Sequence record: PP456879.1
DNA: 64,000 nucleotides
Strand: one strand, 5' to 3'
Position 1 is the first letter of the stretch. Every line of letters begins with the position of its first letter. Below are positions 3,358 through 50,741 of the stretch, in pieces. The notes below the pieces were generated by a model, which was given only the letters and a program-made list of their open reading frames with translations, was not told the DNA's origin and did no database searches. A program made the translations under genes and the position numbers.

Positions 3358-4872
3358 ATGTTTGAGTTATTGTTGTCTTCTGGACTAACAAATACGCCTA
3401 TATATTCCGATCCTTATCCAGGTCCTAAAACACTGATAGCTGGGACAAGGGAATTAGGTTTGTATGGTGAAACAACATCTTCAGAATTATTTGGTTATGA
3501 TGATGCAGCTAAATTAGTTAATATGACATTTGGAACAGTAATCAATGATGGACAACCATGGTTAAAGTTCTCTAATAAAAATGTTACTTGTTACATACCA
3601 AAGAAACCAGCTCGTAAATCAATACAAAAATCACGGCTTAATAATGCCGGACTCCGTAATGGTGACTATGAAGTTAGATTTATGGGGAACATTTATAAAT
3701 TTGGTTTATTAACAATGGCTGGTGCCACATCAGAATGGCAAAGGTTACTTTATAATGTTCACGTATCTAATTTAAATGGTGCTAACTGGCCTTATAAATT
3801 TACAGATAATGACTTAGGTATTAACCAAGCGGTCGCTGGTGGTATTAGCACTGATGGTACTACTAACTGGGGAAGAGACCCAGGTAGTGATCCAGTTAAT
3901 GACCAGCTCTATCGTGGCTACTATGCGATTGATATAACTAGCTCGTCAAGTAGTGAAACGGGTGCTGCAACCCAAGGTTGGCGTCCAGTGGTTTATGCTA
4001 GTGGTACATATCCATTCGTTAAAGATAATGTTATTAAACTTACTGATTTTGAAACTGATAACGAAATGGCAGCAGGTGCCCAAATAGGTAACTTAGTCTA
4101 TTATTACGGTGGTAAGAATAATGCTAATACTGCTCTACGTACACTGAATTTAGTCACGGGTAAGTTAACAACATTACAACCAACTGGTACGCCTATAGCA
4201 GTTAAACAATGCTCGGCTGTTGCATTTAATGGTAAAGTATATTTCTATGGTGGTGAAAGTGCCACAGATGGTGTACTTACTAAAGATATGCAGTGTTATG
4301 ATCCTGCAACTAATACATGGGAAATAAAATCACCAGGCACGATAGCTTGCCGGTATGCACGTGGAACTAGTCTTAATGGGTTAATCTACATATTAGGTGC
4401 AGCTGATACAACTGCGACAAATAATCGTGGATTTACATTAATGTACAATCCAACTACAGATACATATACCAGTGGTGCAGCATTTAATGATACTGGGGAA
4501 TATACCCAAGATTATTCAGTGAGTATTTATAATAATAGCGTATGCGTTATTGGTGGTACGGTTGGTGCTGGTGTTAACACTGGAATCATATCGTACAATC
4601 AAACCAACAATAATTGGTCCAAACCAATAACTACAGGTATACCTCTTGGTGCAGCTATTAATATACGCCCATCTGGTGAACTTTATGTAATCGCTGGTGA
4701 AAATCAAAATAACGCACCAATTAAGTATTATGAACCACGATTAGCACGATGGATAAATTTAGGTAATTTAGAAACTGGTTTAGTGGATGCAGGTTTTGCC
4801 AATACGTTTAATAATGACGGTAAGATTTATGTTCTAAACGGTAATCAGAATTTAAAATACCAAATTAGTTAA
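3358..4872 (+). CDS. gp131-family baseplate/fibre protein with Kelch beta-propeller (gp83-like)
   Basis: N-terminal PGPKTLIAG...WLKF...KKP.R signature; C-terminal Kelch repeats (VYYYGG, VYFYGG, IYILG, VCVIGG, LYVIAG, IYVLNG). Confidence 0.75.
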   Translation: MFELLLSSGLTNTPIYSDPYPGPKTLIAGTRELGLYGETTSSELFGYDDAAKLVNMTFGTVINDGQPWLKFSNKNVTCYIPKKPARKSIQKSRLNNAGLRNGDYEVRFMGNIYKFGLLTMAGATSEWQRLLYNVHVSNLNGANWPYKFTDNDLGINQAVAGGISTDGTTNWGRDPGSDPVNDQLYRGYYAIDITSSSSSETGAATQGWRPVVYASGTYPFVKDNVIKLTDFETDNEMAAGAQIGNLVYYYGGKNNANTALRTLNLVTGKLTTLQPTGTPIAVKQCSAVAFNGKVYFYGGESATDGVLTKDMQCYDPATNTWEIKSPGTIACRYARGTSLNGLIYILGAADTTATNNRGFTLMYNPTTDTYTSGAAFNDTGEYTQDYSVSIYNNSVCVIGGTVGAGVNTGIISYNQTNNNWSKPITTGIPLGAAINIRPSGELYVIAGENQNNAPIKYYEPRLARWINLGNLETGLVDAGFANTFNNDGKIYVLNGNQNLKYQIS

Positions 4873-4876
4873 CGAA

Positions 4877-4907
4877 ATAAACCCTCCCGTAATGGGAGGG
4901 TTTTATG
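4877..4907. terminator. Bidirectional terminator (CCCTCCC family)
   Basis: aaaCCCTCCC-gtaat-GGGAGGGtttt between convergent genes. Confidence 0.8.
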
Positions 4908-4975
4908 ATGTGTCGAAGTTTATGTTAGCAGTAATGATCAATTGATAATATTTAATTAGGAATACCTTCCATTTT

Positions 4976-5344
4976 TTAATATCCTTCATTAAGTAGTTCT
5001 GCTAGAGCACGTGCCTGTGAAATATCAGTAGAAGCAAAAACATCAGAAAGATAGTTATCATGTTCTTTTGCATTCTGACGCAATTCATCCATTAGATGTT
5101 TATTAGATACCGCCCATACTTTCCACAGATTTTTATAATCATCATATTTGGGATTATACCCGTCTAGTGGTGGTTTTCCTTTACCAGCTTTCCAATGGTT
5201 GGAGTATATGCGATATCCTTTACAATCTAACTGCCAAGCTTCCTCAATTGTTCTGCCATCAGGAAGCCTTGCGTAAAGAGCCGAGAATCTTTTGTCACCA
5301 ACAGATGAACATTCATATCCTCCTCGGCGCTTCCACTGATATAT
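4976..5344 (-). CDS. Unannotated 122-codon ORF with no ATG/GTG/TTG at its 5' end (ATA start or -1 frameshift extension of the polymerase subunit)
   Basis: Hand translation IYQWKRRGGYECSSVGDKRFSALYARLPDGRTIEEAWQLDCKGY...ARALAELLNEGY*; fills the gap to the terminator; the ATA overlaps the upstream TAA (TAATA). Confidence 0.75.
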   Translation of the reverse strand: MYQWKRRGGYECSSVGDKRFSALYARLPDGRTIEEAWQLDCKGYRIYSNHWKAGKGKPPLDGYNPKYDDYKNLWKVWAVSNKHLMDELRQNAKEHDNYLSDVFASTDISQARALAELLNEGY

Positions 5345-19546: not shown

Positions 19547-19853
19547 CGTTATGTTCAGGTAAGTTCGCTACGCTTACCCCGCCTCTCGTATTGCAGGCAG
19601 CTGCATGTCACCATGCAGACCAGACTATATCTTAACCTTCACCCTAGGTGGTCAGGTCCCTCCCATTTCCACTCGCTTGAGTGTACTCCGCGTAACCGGA
19701 TAGTCGTTGAACGTTCAATCCATTTCTGGAAAGCTTCGCTGCTGATTGTCTCATTGAGATGTCCCAGCAATTAGAGAGGATTTACTTGACTCTTTCGAGA
19801 TCAAGCAGGCAATTTGACAATATCCATTCCTGAGAGATGGATGGATATTAATT
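19547..19853 (-). mobile_element. Group I intron without ORF (307 nt)
   Basis: P AATTGCTGGGA, Q AATCAGCAG, R GTTCAACGACTA, S AAGATATAGTC; 5' exon ends in U, intron ends in G; P1 GGU|AAUU pairs with AAUUGCC; splicing restores HGG|KGV. Confidence 0.92.
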
Positions 19854-33454: not shown

Positions 33455-33673
33455 TTACGACTTCAACCATTCTTCTAATGGCGGTAAATACTTCTCATGC
33501 GCCCAGTTAATAATTGTTTCTACAACAGGACCCTGTAATTCAAGGTTACCTGAGATTTCATGTGGTTCATCAATAGATAGAACCCATGTATGTGGAGCAA
33601 TGCGTTCAGTTGCTTTGGTTAAATACACATCAGGCATTAACGTTAAATTCAATTGATCGCCGTCAAAATCCGC
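33455..33673 (-). CDS. nvRNAP beta' N-terminal subunit, exon 2 (gp56.1)
   Basis: Starts GCG GAT TTT GAC GGC GAT = ADFDGD, completing the catalytic motif. Confidence 0.92.
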   Translation of the reverse strand, partial: ADFDGDQLNLTLMPDVYLTKATERIAPHTWVLSIDEPHEISGNLELQGPVVETIINWAHEKYLPPLEEWLKS

Positions 33674-35063
33674 CGTTATGTTCAGTATGGGTCGTTAATC
33701 CATACCCGGTAGTATAATTACCACATGATAATTACCACCTGCTGCATGTCGCCATGCAGACCAGACTATATCTTCACCCTTCCTTTCGGAGTAGGGTGTC
33801 TCCCATTTCGAGTCACTTGACTCTACATCCTATTTCTAGGACCGGCGCACCTGATACCGTAATAGTCGTTGAACCTTCTCCTATTCCTAAATGGAATGTT
33901 ACGGAGCTTGGCTGCTGATTGTCCCTACCTAATCTTTTTCAAACCTTGGCTTTGTCTTTCGACTCGCAGTGGTAGATTAGTTTAACAGGATATCCCAGCA
34001 ATTAGAGAGAACTCATCCCAATGATTACTCATTGGGGGAACTAGACTTGATTAACTTAATAAGGTATTTATCAAGCACTCCATTCTTTTCAAAGATTGCT
34101 CTTCGAACAGTATTCGGATGCTTAATACCGACATCTCTTGCAAAGTGTGGAATACTCGGATACACTTTGGTAGTGTTCAAGATGGTGTCGGTTACTTCAA
34201 TTGGAGTACCTTTTCCATTACTAGGTTTTCCAAATGAGGCTTCAATTTCTTTCTGAGTATATTTAGGGAAATCTTCAGGATTAGCGGTATAGGAGAATAC
34301 CAAACCATCCATGATTTCCTTACTACCTCTAACTAGATGGTAATAGGCTTTATTACGTTTAGTACCTAGTGCAAGTTCCATTTCTGCTAAGTTATGGAAC
34401 ACATGCAATGTCTTAGTCTTATAGTCTAAAACATAAACTGTCTTGGTACTTTCACGATCAGCAATCTTAGTCTCACCGGTAATAAATTCAAATGTGAATC
34501 TATTTCTATACGGCTTAGTCTTATGGTCACGTATAATAACCCAAACCGTATTTTTATTAACTCCTAATGCCCGAGCAAGTTCACTCATCGAGTAATAAGT
34601 AGTCTTTTCACCAGTGGTAACATCAGTTGCAATTACCCGTCTATTTTCTTTTCTTAATCCATTTTTGTAAGCATGCTCAATGTTTTCACCACGAGTCATC
34701 CACTCCAAATTAGATGGTAAGTTATTATGTTTGTTACCGTCTTTATGATTGACTTCATAATTTGGTCCAGGTGATGGACCATGGAATGCGGTACAAATTA
34801 GAATATGTGATAATGTAGAATTACTTCTGCCATTATCATTTTTTGCACCCAGCTTCAGATATGAACCAGTTGAAGTAGGTACTTTGTATAACTTACATAT
34901 TCTATTTAACCGCTTATGACGAATTGTTCCTAAGTTACTAGCTTCATATGCTGAGTATCCAGGAATATCCCGCCATTCAATTTTAAATGAAGCCGGATCA
35001 AAGACGGACACTACTCCGTTTTGTTCCATTGTTTTTACCCTTATTTAGTTATTTGCTTATCCG
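33674..35063 (-). mobile_element. Group I intron (1390 nt) carrying a homing endonuclease
   Basis: P/Q/R/S elements at ~33770-34000; exon ends CCTAAT (U), intron ends AACATAACG; splicing gives KAPN|ADFDGDQ. Confidence 0.93.
34025..35029 (-). CDS. Intron-encoded HNH homing endonuclease (NUMOD4-HNH-NUMOD1 repeats; gp56-like)
   Basis: WRDIPGYSAYEASNLG (NUMOD4); VNHKDGNKHNNLPSNLEW (HNH); three NUMOD1-like repeats. Confidence 0.92.
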   Translation of the reverse strand: MEQNGVVSVFDPASFKIEWRDIPGYSAYEASNLGTIRHKRLNRICKLYKVPTSTGSYLKLGAKNDNGRSNSTLSHILICTAFHGPSPGPNYEVNHKDGNKHNNLPSNLEWMTRGENIEHAYKNGLRKENRRVIATDVTTGEKTTYYSMSELARALGVNKNTVWVIIRDHKTKPYRNRFTFEFITGETKIADRESTKTVYVLDYKTKTLHVFHNLAEMELALGTKRNKAYYHLVRGSKEIMDGLVFSYTANPEDFPKYTQKEIEASFGKPSNGKGTPIEVTDTILNTTKVYPSIPHFARDVGIKHPNTVRRAIFEKNGVLDKYLIKLIKSSSPNE

Positions 35064-36308
35064 ATTAGGCGCTTTAAGGCATAAAACTGACATGCTGATA
35101 GAATTATCATTAATGTCATCTTTTACTTTAGTAATAAAGAACTGCTGCGTAGATCCACGTTGAAGCGTTGGATTTCGGTGAAAAGTACAACCCATCCCTT
35201 TATAAGGGGCTGCTTCTGCAATTAGCTCTTTAAATAGATCTGCAATGATTTGGTTATATTGAAGTACATTCTCATATACAAATGAGAATGCTTCACGAGT
35301 TGTCATGTTAAACTTTGCTTTTAGTTTATTGGTTAGATGATACTTTAATAATTGACAACCTACCCCCCAAGGGATATGTAGTTCATCATAATCATGCGGG
35401 TCACTAATAGAAGTGATTACTGCACGTGCCGTAGCGTTGAGACGAGCACCAAACATGTGACGCCGAGCAAGACCAGGCTTTTGAGCAATTCGTGATTTTG
35501 CGTAGATCTCGTAGAACTGGCCATATAGTCTTAGTCCTCGCATAGTCCTATTCTGAGCTTTAATTGGACTAAGTGGTACAGATGATGCATCAATACTAGC
35601 GAAGGTTAAGGTAGCATCAATTGCTGCTTCAATTGGTTTATCTAAGTAAGTACCAGATGTGGTTGATTCTGCTACGAAACAGAGTTTAGAAGGAACTGGT
35701 AAATATTTAGGGAATAACTTATCTTTATTCTGAGCAACGAATTGAGCGAATTCGGATTTATTATTAGAGATAATATTTGCATCTAGTAGGAATTGGAAGA
35801 TCTCATTGAAATTATCAATGAAGTGATTTAATCCTCTTTCAAATCCTCGATGCAGTAGCCTATCTACTTTCCTGCGTGTTTCCTTAGAACCAATAGATTC
35901 TACATCGTATCGATAAGAAGTATCAGTTAGATATGCTAAGAAATCGAATTCTTTAGTTACTAGATATCCGGTTAGCATAATGATTAAACGTGGGTTAATT
36001 AGGCTACGTACATGTTTTGGTGTACGAACCCACATTGATGGTTCGATAGGACGGCTAGAAGTATTGACAACTGGAGTATTACAAATATCACAGATTACTC
36101 CGAGTTTATGTGCGTCTTCGATTGCTCGACAATCACAGCTTACACTACTTTCAATTGCTTCTGAATCTTGGAAATGAGAATAGAAATGCCTATCAAATTC
36201 TTCTTTCTCATCTGAGTTACTCGTATTGTAATCATTGGCATAAATTCGTTTACCCGTAAATTGATCATGAACTTCATTATGATCAACAACTTTGGCATAA
36301 AGACCCAT
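35064..36308 (-). CDS. nvRNAP beta' N-terminal subunit, exon 1 (gp55; spliced product 487 aa)
   Basis: Zn ribbon CDC...CDIC, RRHMFGARLNATARAVI, FHRNPTLQRGS beta' motifs. Confidence 0.92.
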
Positions 36309-36343
36309 ACCAAACTCCTATTTATCGATTAACAAAAAAAGGA

Positions 36344-36377
36344 GATATAAGCGGCCCCCGAAGGAGCCGCTATATCA
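36344..36377 (-). terminator. Strong terminator ending the chmA transcript
   Basis: gatatagcggctcc-ttcg-ggggccgcttatatc then ccttttttt (minus strand). Confidence 0.85.
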
Positions 36378-36700
36378 GTTTTTACAATGGACCACCAACG
36401 GAGCCTGGCCCGATCCTAGCGTCATCTACAAAGCTTAACCTCCGCTCTTCTCTGTAGCATACCGGCACTAGTATCATTTACCATCCATTGTAGTTTTTGA
36501 TCACACGTCACCTTTTGAGTAACTCCTTTCGGTTAAGTGATCTATCATCCTCGTGTAGTGATAGGTCGACCTAGACTAAGTCCACTAGTCGATTACTTCA
36601 CGGAACCTACTCCTAACCGTTATCACCGAAGTGAACCAGGGTCGCAGTATTAGAATCGGGATGTTACTTATTTAACATCCCTATCTACCGAGGTATTTCC
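36378..36700 (-). ncRNA. Putative structured RNA / long 3' UTR of chmA
   Basis: No credible ORF; at least 7 inverted repeats including a 9-bp long-range helix; GC-richer than other intergenic DNA. Confidence 0.5.
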
Positions 36701-36702
36701 TA

Positions 36703-38583
36703 TTAGTACCAGGTACCCGGTGCATTATAGGAAGGAGCGCCGTAAGTTTGACCCATGCTGCCAGCCATACCAACTTGTGCACTACCAGAAACAGCCATGT
36801 TACCCATACCGGTGTAACCAGCGAAGCGCTGTTGACCGAAGTTGGTAATTAGGTTTTCCATGGTTACAGTTACACCAGCGGCTGCTGCTGCGGCATCCAT
36901 TGCGGTGATGAATTTCGGGTTAAAGGTTAGACGACGAGCACGACCAGTATAGGTAACGTTACCTAGGTACATCTTGTCGAAGCCTTTACTGTTATTCATA
37001 CGACGCACAATGTGGTCATTACCTACCTGAGTAGCATACCAGGTCTTCCACTCTTGGTCATTACCTTCAGACATGTTCATGGCACCTAGAACGTCAAGAT
37101 CACGACGGTCGCTTAGTTCGCCATGCTCATCAGTGTAGTGACCGAGGTCTACTTCATGATGGTTGTCAAAGATAATCGGACCAGCTTCAGCTAGGTTATA
37201 GAACTGACGGAAATCAGTGCCGTATAGGTTAGTTAGAGCTTGGAAGATCAGGCTAACTGCACGAGCTTGGTTTACGCCACCAGCTGCATCTAGGATGACT
37301 TGCTCAATAGCTGAGTTGTCGCCCATTGGATCGATATCGATCTGGAATGCAGGGTTCTGGTTAACCATCTTGTTCATTAGCATTACGAAGTTGCTGTCGT
37401 CTGCCATGAATGCTTCGGTGCGAGTTTCAATCGCTTTACCTAGCTCTGAGTAATAACCAAGTGCACCAATATCACGCATCTTACTAGTAGCGATCTTCGG
37501 CATTAGAGTACGAGCCCATGCCTGAGATGCAGTTGCACGATACGCGTTACCAAGCGCGAACAGCCACATTTCTAGAGTCCATGCTTGGATCCAGGACGCC
37601 TTACGAACGTCAGTAATAACGATGTAAGGAGTGAACTGCGGAGGTAGAACTGCACCAGGTAGAGTTACGCCAAACATGCCTTGTTGCTGGCCAGTGGTCG
37701 GAGTCCAATGTAGATCTACGAATAGACTAACTTGGTTTAGCTGGCTATCGGTATCATAGAACTCGTTCTCAGGTACGTTGGTTTTCTTACCACGGCTAGT
37801 GGAGATGACCAGGTCAGAACGGATCGGATTACCACAGCTATCTTTAACCGGAATACCATTGTAGTCTAGATTGCAGGTAAGCTGTTCGTTTTCTGCTTTG
37901 ATGTGGGTCGCAATAGAGAACGGAGTCTCATTGTTACGACGCGCAATAGCATCTTCACAGATATTAACGGATTCAACTAGTAGGTTCTTAACAGCTAGTT
38001 CATCTTTGAAGTCGAAGTCAGCATACACTGCACGTGGACCGGCAGATAGTACTTCTAGACCAGGGATGTTGTAACGGTTCCGTAGGAACTCGCCGATCTT
38101 GCTCCAGTATTGAGCAGTGAATACATCACGCGGTAGTACCTTCTCTTCAATGATGTCATCAGTTAGACCATTATTGATTTTGTGGGTACGGGGACGGATG
38201 CGAGTACCAGGTAGGTTATCGAGTACTAGAGTACGAACGAATGCCTTCATGGAACCATTGATATCTTTAGCTAGTTTAACAATGAGTAGACCAGCCATAC
38301 CCACTTGTTGTGCATCGCGATCGAAACGATGGATATCGAAGTCATCAGGTAGGTCCTGATGGCGGATTGCTTCTTCTTTTACTTTAGTGAATACTTGTAG
38401 GGCATCTGCTGAACGAGCATCAGAGCCATCTAGCCGACCAGAGCGACGCATTAGATGGTTAATGCCAGTAGTAGACCCAGGCGCGCCAGTAGGACGTTGA
38501 GCTTGACGCTGTGCAGTGGGTTGCGGAGCCGGAGCGGTAGCTTGAGTTTGAACGGTGCCGATTTCGTTTTCGTTAACAGCCAT
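36703..38583 (-). CDS. chmA: Chimallin, major phage nuclear shell protein (gp54)
   Basis: 626 aa; recognised sequence; disordered Q/P/A N-terminus; directly upstream of nvRNAP beta' gp55; highly expressed codon bias. Confidence 0.9.
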
Positions 38584-38655
38584 TTTAAATACCTTTACGA
38601 TTATGGTTTCTTGATCAAGAAGAACCTAAGTACTTAGTATACTAGATTCAATTTA

Positions 38656-38663
38656 GTAATATA
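38656..38663 (-). promoter_or_regulatory. Early promoter TATATTAC of chmA
   Basis: AAAAAAATTTGAGATTTATATTAC ~70 nt upstream of the start. Confidence 0.75.
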
Positions 38664-38894
38664 AATCTCAAATTTTTTTCATTACAACATAGACGCTATA
38701 ATCTGCTATCAGCAGATCGTAACGAACACTATGTTCACTACATATTATTACAATCTGAGTATTATTTATTTTTCATCTTACAATTTCCATATCTTCTTTT
38801 TTGAGTTTATGGGTATAAAGTTTGAATCCAGAAACTAATTTACGTCAGTCCTGTATTAAATAATAACTATCAGTATTTTTATAAAATGCAGTTA

Positions 38895-50271: not shown

Positions 50272-50741
50272 TTAGTTAATATAACACCCCATCCAGGGTG
50301 GACTCTTTCGAAAAATGGTAATGTATTATTTCGTATACTGTCTGCATCAATATTTGGAATGTGGATGGTACAACAGTGGGGGTTACTGTCAATCTTGAAA
50401 TAGAAATTATCTTTTAAATCTTCAACCTTGGATGTTTGTAATGGATATAAAATACCATTCCCCCAAACATACCAACGTCTATACAGCTTATCGTTTAACC
50501 GCTTCTCAATAACCGAATGCGATTTGAAACGAGGAACTCGCAAACGCATCCCGTTTACTTCAGCCCATTTGTCTACCCGATCATAGCTAATAATTCCATC
50601 CTTAACCATTACAAAGATAAATCCCTCAACTATGTTGGGGAGACGAACTACGTGTTTCAGAACCATAGTAAACGGAGATAACGTCAGATCAAGTTCAGCT
50701 GCCATTTGCTCGTCGAGCTTTTTAGCAGTGTTCTTTGCCAT
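50268..50741 (-). CDS. Hypothetical protein
   Basis: 157 aa, SD AGGAG. Confidence 0.75.
   Translation of the reverse strand: MAKNTAKKLDEQMAAELDLTLSPFTMVLKHVVRLPNIVEGFIFVMVKDGIISYDRVDKWAEVNGMRLRVPRFKSHSVIEKRLNDKLYRRWYVWGNGILYPLQTSKVEDLKDNFYFKIDSNPHCCTIHIPNIDADSIRNNTLPFFERVHPGWGVILTN

Follow-up and report, generated by a model that had tools for sequence, protein, structure and literature searches.

The chmA message of phiKZ-type jumbo phages ends in a large, structured non-coding RNA that represents a real family, previously undescribed in Rfam and in the literature searched here. We examined a 64,000-nt stretch of sequence record PP456879.1 (the window), which derives from a phiKZ-type Pseudomonas aeruginosa jumbo phage; the 5 kb around the element match phage vB_Pae10145-KEN51 with 100% identity and phiKZ with 97.6%. 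The element lies on the minus strand in the gap between chmA, the gene for the nuclear shell protein chimallin, and gp55, which encodes the N-terminal beta' subunit of the non-virion RNA polymerase (nvRNAP). The whole non-coding 3' region of the chmA transcript, made up of three domains, an intrinsic terminator and a U-tract, covers positions 36334-36702. Judged by comparison with related phages, the base pairs of this RNA are maintained by selection, and the element constitutes a single-copy RNA family that is always located directly behind chmA in Pseudomonas chimalliviruses.

The original prediction, made from the letters of the window alone, placed a structured RNA without coding function between chmA and its terminator, on the strand that is transcribed, and this is borne out by the fold, by covariation and by the lack of a conserved open reading frame (ORF). 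Without its terminator, the sense strand folds at -97.1 kcal/mol (z = -2.7), better by 21 kcal/mol than the antisense strand (-75.8 kcal/mol, z = -1.4); with the terminator included, z is -3.8. A consensus structure obtained with RNAalifold from 10 sequences (six from the phiKZ clade and four from the PA1C clade) has 108 pairs in 16 helices, which form three domains and the terminator. Standard pairs occupy 99.5% of the sequence-by-pair cells in this alignment and eight pairs are altered on both sides, three of them through independent events within single lineages (W10-2, HPP-Temi and phiKZ). The covariation among relatives that the original prediction had proposed as a check was thus found, and none of 500 shuffled controls matched these pairing and double-change values. 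When partners were shifted by 1-3 columns, only 33-42% of cells remained paired.

Direct comparison of the window with PA1C gave the same picture. Thirteen pairs are altered and none is broken (five changed on both sides, eight to or from G.U), while unpaired positions carry 35 substitutions and 9 indel columns. Because all pair changes since the phiKZ and PA1C copies diverged retain pairing, the fold itself is under selection. At least 12 G.U pairs are conserved, and as these would be A.C mismatches on the opposite strand, the structure belongs to the chmA-sense RNA, the strand to which the folding energy also assigns it.

The three domains follow one another on the minus strand. Domain 1 (36550-36692) is enclosed by helix P1 (36689-92/36550-53), which surrounds P2/P2a, P3/P3a and P4/P4a/P4b; double-sided changes fall in P1, P2, P2a, P4 and P4a. 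The 9-bp hairpin P2a (36658-36681, GGGAUGUUA/UAACAUCCC) has a U-A pair replaced by C-G in PA1C, and in PhiPA3 its distal stem differs yet still pairs. A GGGAU...AUCCC-type hairpin resembling P2a also stands directly past the chmA stop codon in 201phi2-1 and Phabio. Domain 2 (36499-36542), the part found by our covariance models R1 and R2, is a three-way junction that consists, in order, of a 6-bp closing stem (GAUCAC/GUGAUC), a UUAA junction strand, a CC-GAAA-GG hairpin, one A, a second 6-bp hairpin and GU. Half of its 14 pairs (seven) are altered on both sides and 99.1% of cells are paired among eight sequences, in an alignment that was fitted by the model and leans towards the structure. Domain 3 (36385-36490) is built on an 8-bp closing stem (36483-90/36385-92), with a long arm (D3a/D3b/D3c) whose apical part is invariant (…GAGAAGAGCGGAGGUUAAGCUUUGUAG…) and a side hairpin, D3d; its double-sided changes are in the closing stem and in D3a.

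A candidate 7-bp pairing of CUUAACC in domain 2 with GGUUAAG in domain 3 is invariant in the phiKZ and PA1C types and so lacks covariation, and it is reduced to 5 bp in PhiPA3, which leaves it as an idea. Pairing of the element with the chmA 5' untranslated region (UTR) had a duplex energy no better than that obtained with shuffled UTRs.

The individual helices of the original prediction fared unevenly against this consensus. Four of the seven coincide with it: 36658-66/36673-81 is P2a, 36499-504/36537-42 is the closing stem of domain 2 with its inner CC-GAAA-GG hairpin, 36426-30/36453-57 is D3b, and the long-range helix 36383-91/36484-92 is the closing stem of domain 3. A fifth, 36574-78/36586-90, is another register of P4a/P4b, and a G-C for A-U swap in W10-2 favors the consensus register. 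The remaining two (36600-03/36617-20 and 36542-47/36559-64) clash with covarying helices and are not kept in PA1C.

We found the element in 57 phage records, all from Pseudomonas phages. To follow it into more distant genomes we used two covariance models, R1, which was built from domains 2 and 3 of phiKZ- and PA1C-type sequences only, and R2, to which the PhiPA3 and Phabio sequences were added. From 117 kb, R1 picked the syntenic site in both PhiPA3 (E = 0.02) and Phabio (E = 0.24). Across the complete genomes of phiKZ, PA1C, PhiPA3 and Phabio, R2 had a single significant match per genome, to domain 2, and in every case it was directly behind chmA. PhiPA3 retains P1, P2, P2a, P3, P4 (with about 190 nt inserted in its distal part), domain 2 and the terminator. 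Domain 3 was found in the phiKZ clade, the PA1C clade and phiHQ, and was not recognizable in PhiPA3, Phabio or 201phi2-1. Phage 201phi2-1, which was held out of the model, is a candidate member only: its best match within the locus is at the same place (E = 0.027 with filters off), and the whole-genome scan did not recover it. Two further leads were set aside. Psa21 has the junction CUUAAGCGAAAGC by eye, but R2 finds nothing there, and a hand-written descriptor of the three-way junction does not serve as evidence, being too loose (14 window matches) and itself modelled on these sequences.

Presence of the element varies even among close relatives, as Psa21 has an insert in the chmA-gp55 gap and D6 has none. 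In D6 and Noxifer the spacing between the two genes is 84-87 nt, which is the terminator only, and since these phages are without it, the element is accessory and not essential to the phage nucleus. From these gaps, the ancestral order looks like chmA-terminator-gp55, with RNA modules later inserted upstream of the terminator in several lineages. We also noted small protein genes inserted between the chmA 3' RNA and gp55 in 201phi2-1 (locus positions 4484-5050), Phabio (4537-4809) and Viktualia (4518-4850), and in Phabio a second UUCG-loop terminator follows the inserted gene. The chmA-gp55 junction is thus an insertion hot spot for RNA and protein cassettes alike.

The history of the element differs from that of the genes around it. 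Nucleotide identity between the window and PA1C is 86% in the element compared with 56% in chmA and 64% in gp55 exon 1, with third codon positions at 39-40%, near saturation; the ChmA proteins of the window and the PA1C/Pawinskivirus clade are only 48-49% identical. This block of high identity extends from 13 nt past the chmA stop codon to the U-run. PA1C and PhiPA3 are closer to each other by protein (65% for ChmA and 84% for gp55 at the amino acid level), yet identity between their elements reaches only about 62% of aligned columns. Within the phiKZ clade, D3a of domain 3 contains a PA1C-like patch in SL2, PA7, T2P and W10-2, where phiKZ and the window differ. In phiHQ, the whole of domain 1 has been replaced by another structured module (z = -4.7). 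Because identity outranks that of the flanking genes, and because of the PA1C/PhiPA3 incongruence, the D3a patch and the phiHQ swap, sequence comparison shows that the element has been exchanged horizontally and in modules among co-infecting phages.

The replacement module of phiHQ (…GGUCUGACG…GCCAAAGUC…ACUUACGGUGAUGUAA…; locus positions 294-600), which is unrelated to the element, recurs in the chmA-gp55 gap of Psa21 (4380-4570). An 87-nt piece of it, 82% identical, is found in the Ralstonia phage RP13 (2501-2588), 10 nt upstream of a tRNA-Leu gene. Its stem has compensating changes among the three phages; it had no Rfam match, and no phage record beyond these three contained it.

Searches outside known phages returned nothing further. 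Two invariant cores of the element were absent from 185,579 bacterial and archaeal genomes, and on that account there is no sign of a host origin. Scans of IMG/VR returned nothing beyond PhiPA3 and Psa21 themselves. We rejected 120 metagenome loci that matched the pattern CACTTAACCNAAAGGNGT as chance matches, as nhmmer with the element profile found no homologues among them.

The original prediction had seen no credible ORF here, and relatives indeed keep no frame: no ORF of the chmA-gp55 gap is conserved among them, and we found no frame under the purifying selection expected of a small protein gene. In the SL2, PA7 and PA1C types the sole sense-strand frame (36382-36477) has lost its ATG, a 1-nt deletion shifts the frame in PS119XW, and its stop falls at a different place in PA1C; element indels among relatives are 1-2 nt long. 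The element therefore occupies the position of a 3' UTR-derived non-coding RNA (ncRNA), from stop codon to terminator on the mRNA strand and without an ORF. Small 'hypothetical protein' genes are annotated inside the element in HPP-Temi, HHBS36_1, KEN51 and others (for example 274-381 and 527-715 in locus L010, and 274-381 and 526-714 in L012), and Psa21 gp057 is annotated on the opposite strand (L004, 4341-4583 antisense). As their frames are not conserved, these annotations are probably over-calls.

Known RNA classes do not account for the element. A cmscan of positions 35800-37300 against Rfam 15 at E <= 10 gave only two chance matches (Hovlinc and SNORD104), and the gaps of seven relatives gave none at E <= 1, so the Infernal/Rfam search that the original prediction had called for assigns the element to no family, including riboswitch, T-box and leader families. 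The same library did pick up both genuine group I introns that the window contains outside the element. Within the element there was no Intron_gpI match and no RNA splice joint, and ARAGORN found no tRNA-like gene in the element or in the gaps of relatives.

The 3' boundary is formed by an intrinsic terminator (36334-36376, minus strand) with a two-tier stem, in which a 4-bp lower stem (36373-76/36344-47) supports a 9-bp GC stem (36363-71/36350-58) with a UUCG loop, followed by UCC and U7 (36334-40). A UUCG-loop hairpin with a U-tract precedes gp55 in all relatives examined (PA1C, PhiPA3, Psa21, D6, 201phi2-1, Phabio, Viktualia and Noxifer). A simple terminator scan did not call the site at 36334-36376, probably because the U-run begins 3 nt past the extended stem. 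The gp55 start codon is 25 nt past the U-run (gp55 begins at 36308). RNA contigs cross the terminator into gp55, which likely reflects read-through, although DNA carry-over would give the same result and the efficiency of termination is not readable from contigs.

Transcription of the element with chmA is supported by RNA-seq contigs from four independent studies, which extend from chmA across the element and the terminator into gp55 and show no splice joint within the element. The contigs thus continue past the chmA stop codon, in line with the original prediction. In phiKZ, PHIKZ054 was assigned to an operon of six genes that has both an early and a middle promoter (Wicke 2021, PMC8244752). 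Only two phage RNAs sedimented apart from mRNAs in Grad-seq at 10 min (PMC8545117); the chmA 3' element is not among them, which fits an element that acts in cis. The main texts of PMC8244752, PMC8545117 and PMC10914365 (the last using ONT-cappable-seq) name no RNA at this locus. A chmA-targeted text search of the 201phi2-1 paper (PMC11512511) likewise found none, and 3 of its 11 small RNAs (sRNAs) are described just as intergenic. The closest report concerns ChmC, a nucleus-associated RNA-binding protein, for which enhanced crosslinking and immunoprecipitation (eCLIP) in PhiPA3 gave peaks between chmA (gp53) and gp54 that were interpreted as small regulatory RNAs (Enustun 2024, PMC11077065). 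As this is the homologous gap, the element appears to have been glimpsed but never defined.

The element is flanked by chmA and gp55. ChmA (36703-38583, minus strand) matches Pfam PF25677 (Chimallin_Phikzvirus) over its full length with E = 0 and is 99.7% identical to phiKZ gp54. Upstream of it, we noted an early-promoter motif (TTTATATTAC) at about 38657-38666 and, in the 5' UTR, a palindromic hairpin (UUCUUGAUCAAGAA; 38606-38625, minus strand; approximately 1085-1100 in locus L001) that is kept in the phiKZ and PA1C clades despite a diverged leader. On the other side, gp55 exon 1 (35064-36308, minus strand), annotated in relatives as an RNA polymerase beta subunit, is followed by a group I intron, some 1.39 kb long (33674-35063, minus strand; Rfam Intron_gpI match at 33742-34062) that bears the HNH endonuclease gene gp56 (34025-35029, minus strand). 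RNA-seq contigs from three studies join 35064 to phiKZ 50540-50569 (window 33644-33673, 3 mismatches), so this intron is excised. The second exon opens with the codons of ADFDGDQ, which in beta' is the catalytic motif that binds Mg, and the gene is unbroken in PA1C and PhiPA3. The annotated gp55 (419 aa) is therefore incomplete, because the gene is split by the spliced intron. A second group I intron (19601-19829, minus strand; Rfam Intron_gpI, 84 bits) has no endonuclease ORF.

Our preferred reading, on which our confidence is evenly balanced, is that the chmA message has this stretch as its structured 3' end, which would be stable, bound by ChmC and active in cis. The architecture provides the starting point, as about 330 nt in three independently folding domains, then the conserved two-tier terminator, would make up the 3' end of the transcript. 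Compact domains and a terminator hairpin may together act as a nuclease-resistant module that extends the life of a message needed in bulk. The terminator would also limit read-through to gp55, so that one operon could yield much ChmA and little gp55. The conserved sequences of the junctions and loops could serve as a platform for ChmC and in this way tie the chmA message, or else a stable fragment from its 3' end, to the nuclear shell.

Several observations weigh against this reading. The 86% identity between the window and PA1C may largely stem from recent transfer and not from constraint on each base. The RNA-seq evidence consists of assembled contigs, from which transcript ends, strand and depth are not readable. 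The eCLIP observation comes down to a single sentence, and it concerns a phage, PhiPA3, that has a different domain 3. Two phages, D6 and Noxifer, lack the element. Finally, a terminator hairpin alone usually protects a 3' end, yet here there are 330 nt with conserved junctions, which suggests a role more specific than bulk stabilization.

Other explanations place the function of the RNA elsewhere. It could be a discrete, stable ncRNA or ribonucleoprotein (RNP) cut from the chmA 3' UTR that acts in trans, whether as a scaffold bound by ChmC, as a nucleator of condensates or as a decoy that draws off a host RNA-binding factor or defense sensor. The interpretation of the PhiPA3 peaks as small regulatory RNAs (Enustun 2024, PMC11077065) points this way, as do the precedents of 3' UTR-derived ncRNAs in PAK_P3 and at phiKZ PHIKZ298; the conservation of unpaired sequences in the junction and loops (CUUAA, GGAGGUUAAG) hints at specific recognition, and horizontal exchange with an accessory distribution would fit an RNA 'moron'. 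We nonetheless consider a trans-acting RNA unlikely, given that the locus is not named among ncRNA candidates in the main texts of the phiKZ Grad-seq, differential RNA-seq (dRNA-seq) and ONT-cappable-seq studies and that no internal promoter motif is conserved; the contigs, for their part, carry no information on fragment ends. The sponge proposed in the original prediction, an RsmY/RsmZ-like RNA that titrates host RsmA through GGA loops, is a further reading that we regard as very improbable. The host does possess a Gac/Rsm system, there are nine GGA triplets as originally counted, and one conserved GGAG is in an apical loop. The count, however, is no excess, modest or otherwise (8.4 +/- 2.0 expected from dinucleotide shuffles, P = 0.47), and the triplets are not set in several loops as had been described: six of the nine are paired, two are in linkers that PA1C does not keep, and only one is in a hairpin loop (GCGGAGGU, the apical loop of domain 3). 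No RsmY, RsmZ or CsrB match was found in Rfam at E <= 10. The broader proposal of a structured 3' UTR or processed sRNA therefore stands as far as a structured non-coding RNA on the chmA transcript is concerned, while the sponge role does not; its other suggestions, a stability element or an mRNA export or localization signal, may still apply.

Two more readings, both of which we think quite improbable and to a similar degree, turn on the terminator and on the mobility of the element. The domains could form an attenuator leader for gp55, sensing a protein or ligand or modifying the phage RNA polymerase and thereby setting passage through the terminator. The layout is suggestive, with a structured RNA, a terminator and then a ribosome binding site and the gp55 start 25 nt on; likely read-through, the placement of chmA and gp55 in one operon (PMC8244752) and the unusual conservation of the terminator sequence, loop included, are also consistent with attenuation. 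Against it, riboswitch, T-box and leader families gave no Rfam match at E <= 10, and inspection of the alignment by eye, rather than a formal search, revealed no conserved antiterminator pairing, the sole competitor being a 6-nt GGCUCC repeat in D3d that is absent from PhiPA3. Moreover, D6 and Noxifer manage without such domains, as their gp55 is expressed with only the same terminator ahead of it. Alternatively, the element could be a selfish or relic mobile RNA or DNA cassette, such as the remains of an intron-like element, that persists by recombination between co-infecting phages and not by benefit. Phylogenetic incongruence and mosaicism would be expected of such a cassette, and the swap of a whole domain in phiHQ for a module common to Psa21 and RP13, the patchy presence in close relatives and the two true group I introns of the same window agree with it. 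What argues otherwise is that every pair change between the phiKZ and PA1C copies keeps pairing, as expected of a selected fold, and that the element always occupies one site in one orientation. It also matches neither Intron_gpI nor another ribozyme in a scan that detects both real introns, and the contigs show no splice joint within it, yet the gp55 intron is seen spliced out.

A more far-reaching version of the cis-acting 3' end deserves mention, though we hold it to be doubtful and somewhat less probable than the trans-acting RNA. The element might be the first of a class of modular, horizontally exchanged RNA cassettes and might serve, through ChmC, as a 'zip code' for export of the chmA message, for its local translation at the early phage infection (EPI) vesicle or the nascent nucleus, or for both; as a variant, a released RNP might organize ChmC condensates at the shell. 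If true, a phage would be using a type of RNA localization or export signal whose other known examples are in eukaryotic cells. Whichever function applies, phiKZ is the model nucleus-forming phage and chmA its defining gene, and the finding bears on how that message is stabilized, exported and translated. With the element there is a concrete object, open to deletion and probing, on which the handling of RNA at the phage nucleus can be tested. The finding further corrects the small-protein annotations in GenBank and would supply a new family for RNA databases.

The element shares features with several known systems and differs from each. RsmY and RsmZ of the CsrB family are likewise structured, Pseudomonas-associated RNAs with GGA triplets and a terminator at the end, but the GGA triplets of the element are not enriched and are mostly paired and there is no Rfam match, so that membership fails. 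Intercistronic repetitive extragenic palindromic sequences and bacterial interspersed mosaic elements (REP/BIME), as in malE-malF of E. coli, guard the upstream message and lower expression of the downstream gene. From this established knowledge, the element resembles them as a stable structure between two cistrons of one operon; REP sequences, however, are short, simple hairpins in many copies, whereas the element is single-copy, about 330 nt long and has conserved junction sequences. GOLLD and ROOL are large, multi-domain, covariation-supported RNAs of unknown function that are carried by phages and mobile between genomes. Rfam matches the element to neither of them; it is a smaller RNA and is linked with the 3' end of one particular protein gene, not with tRNA clusters.

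Two further parallels are phage RNAs. The ChmC-bound RNAs of PhiPA3 arise from the same syntenic gap, where domains 1 and 2 and the terminator all have homologues; that paper gives coverage peaks without boundaries, structure, family or conservation, and phiKZ was not studied in it. Also comparable are the 3' UTR-derived ncRNAs 3'UTR_PHIKZ298 of phiKZ (about 100 nt) and ncRNA1 and ncRNA2 of PAK_P3 (PMC8545117, PMC10914365). All are structured RNAs that run from a stop codon to an intrinsic terminator; none has its own mapped promoter, and their conservation is at the level of a genus. The element is three times longer, multi-domain with a three-way junction, present across genera and horizontally exchanged, and no discrete processed species has been reported for it. 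Structured 3' UTRs and phage RNAs derived from them are thus already known, and the element described here is distinguished from them by its size, its architecture, its spread across genera, its mobility and its link to chmA.

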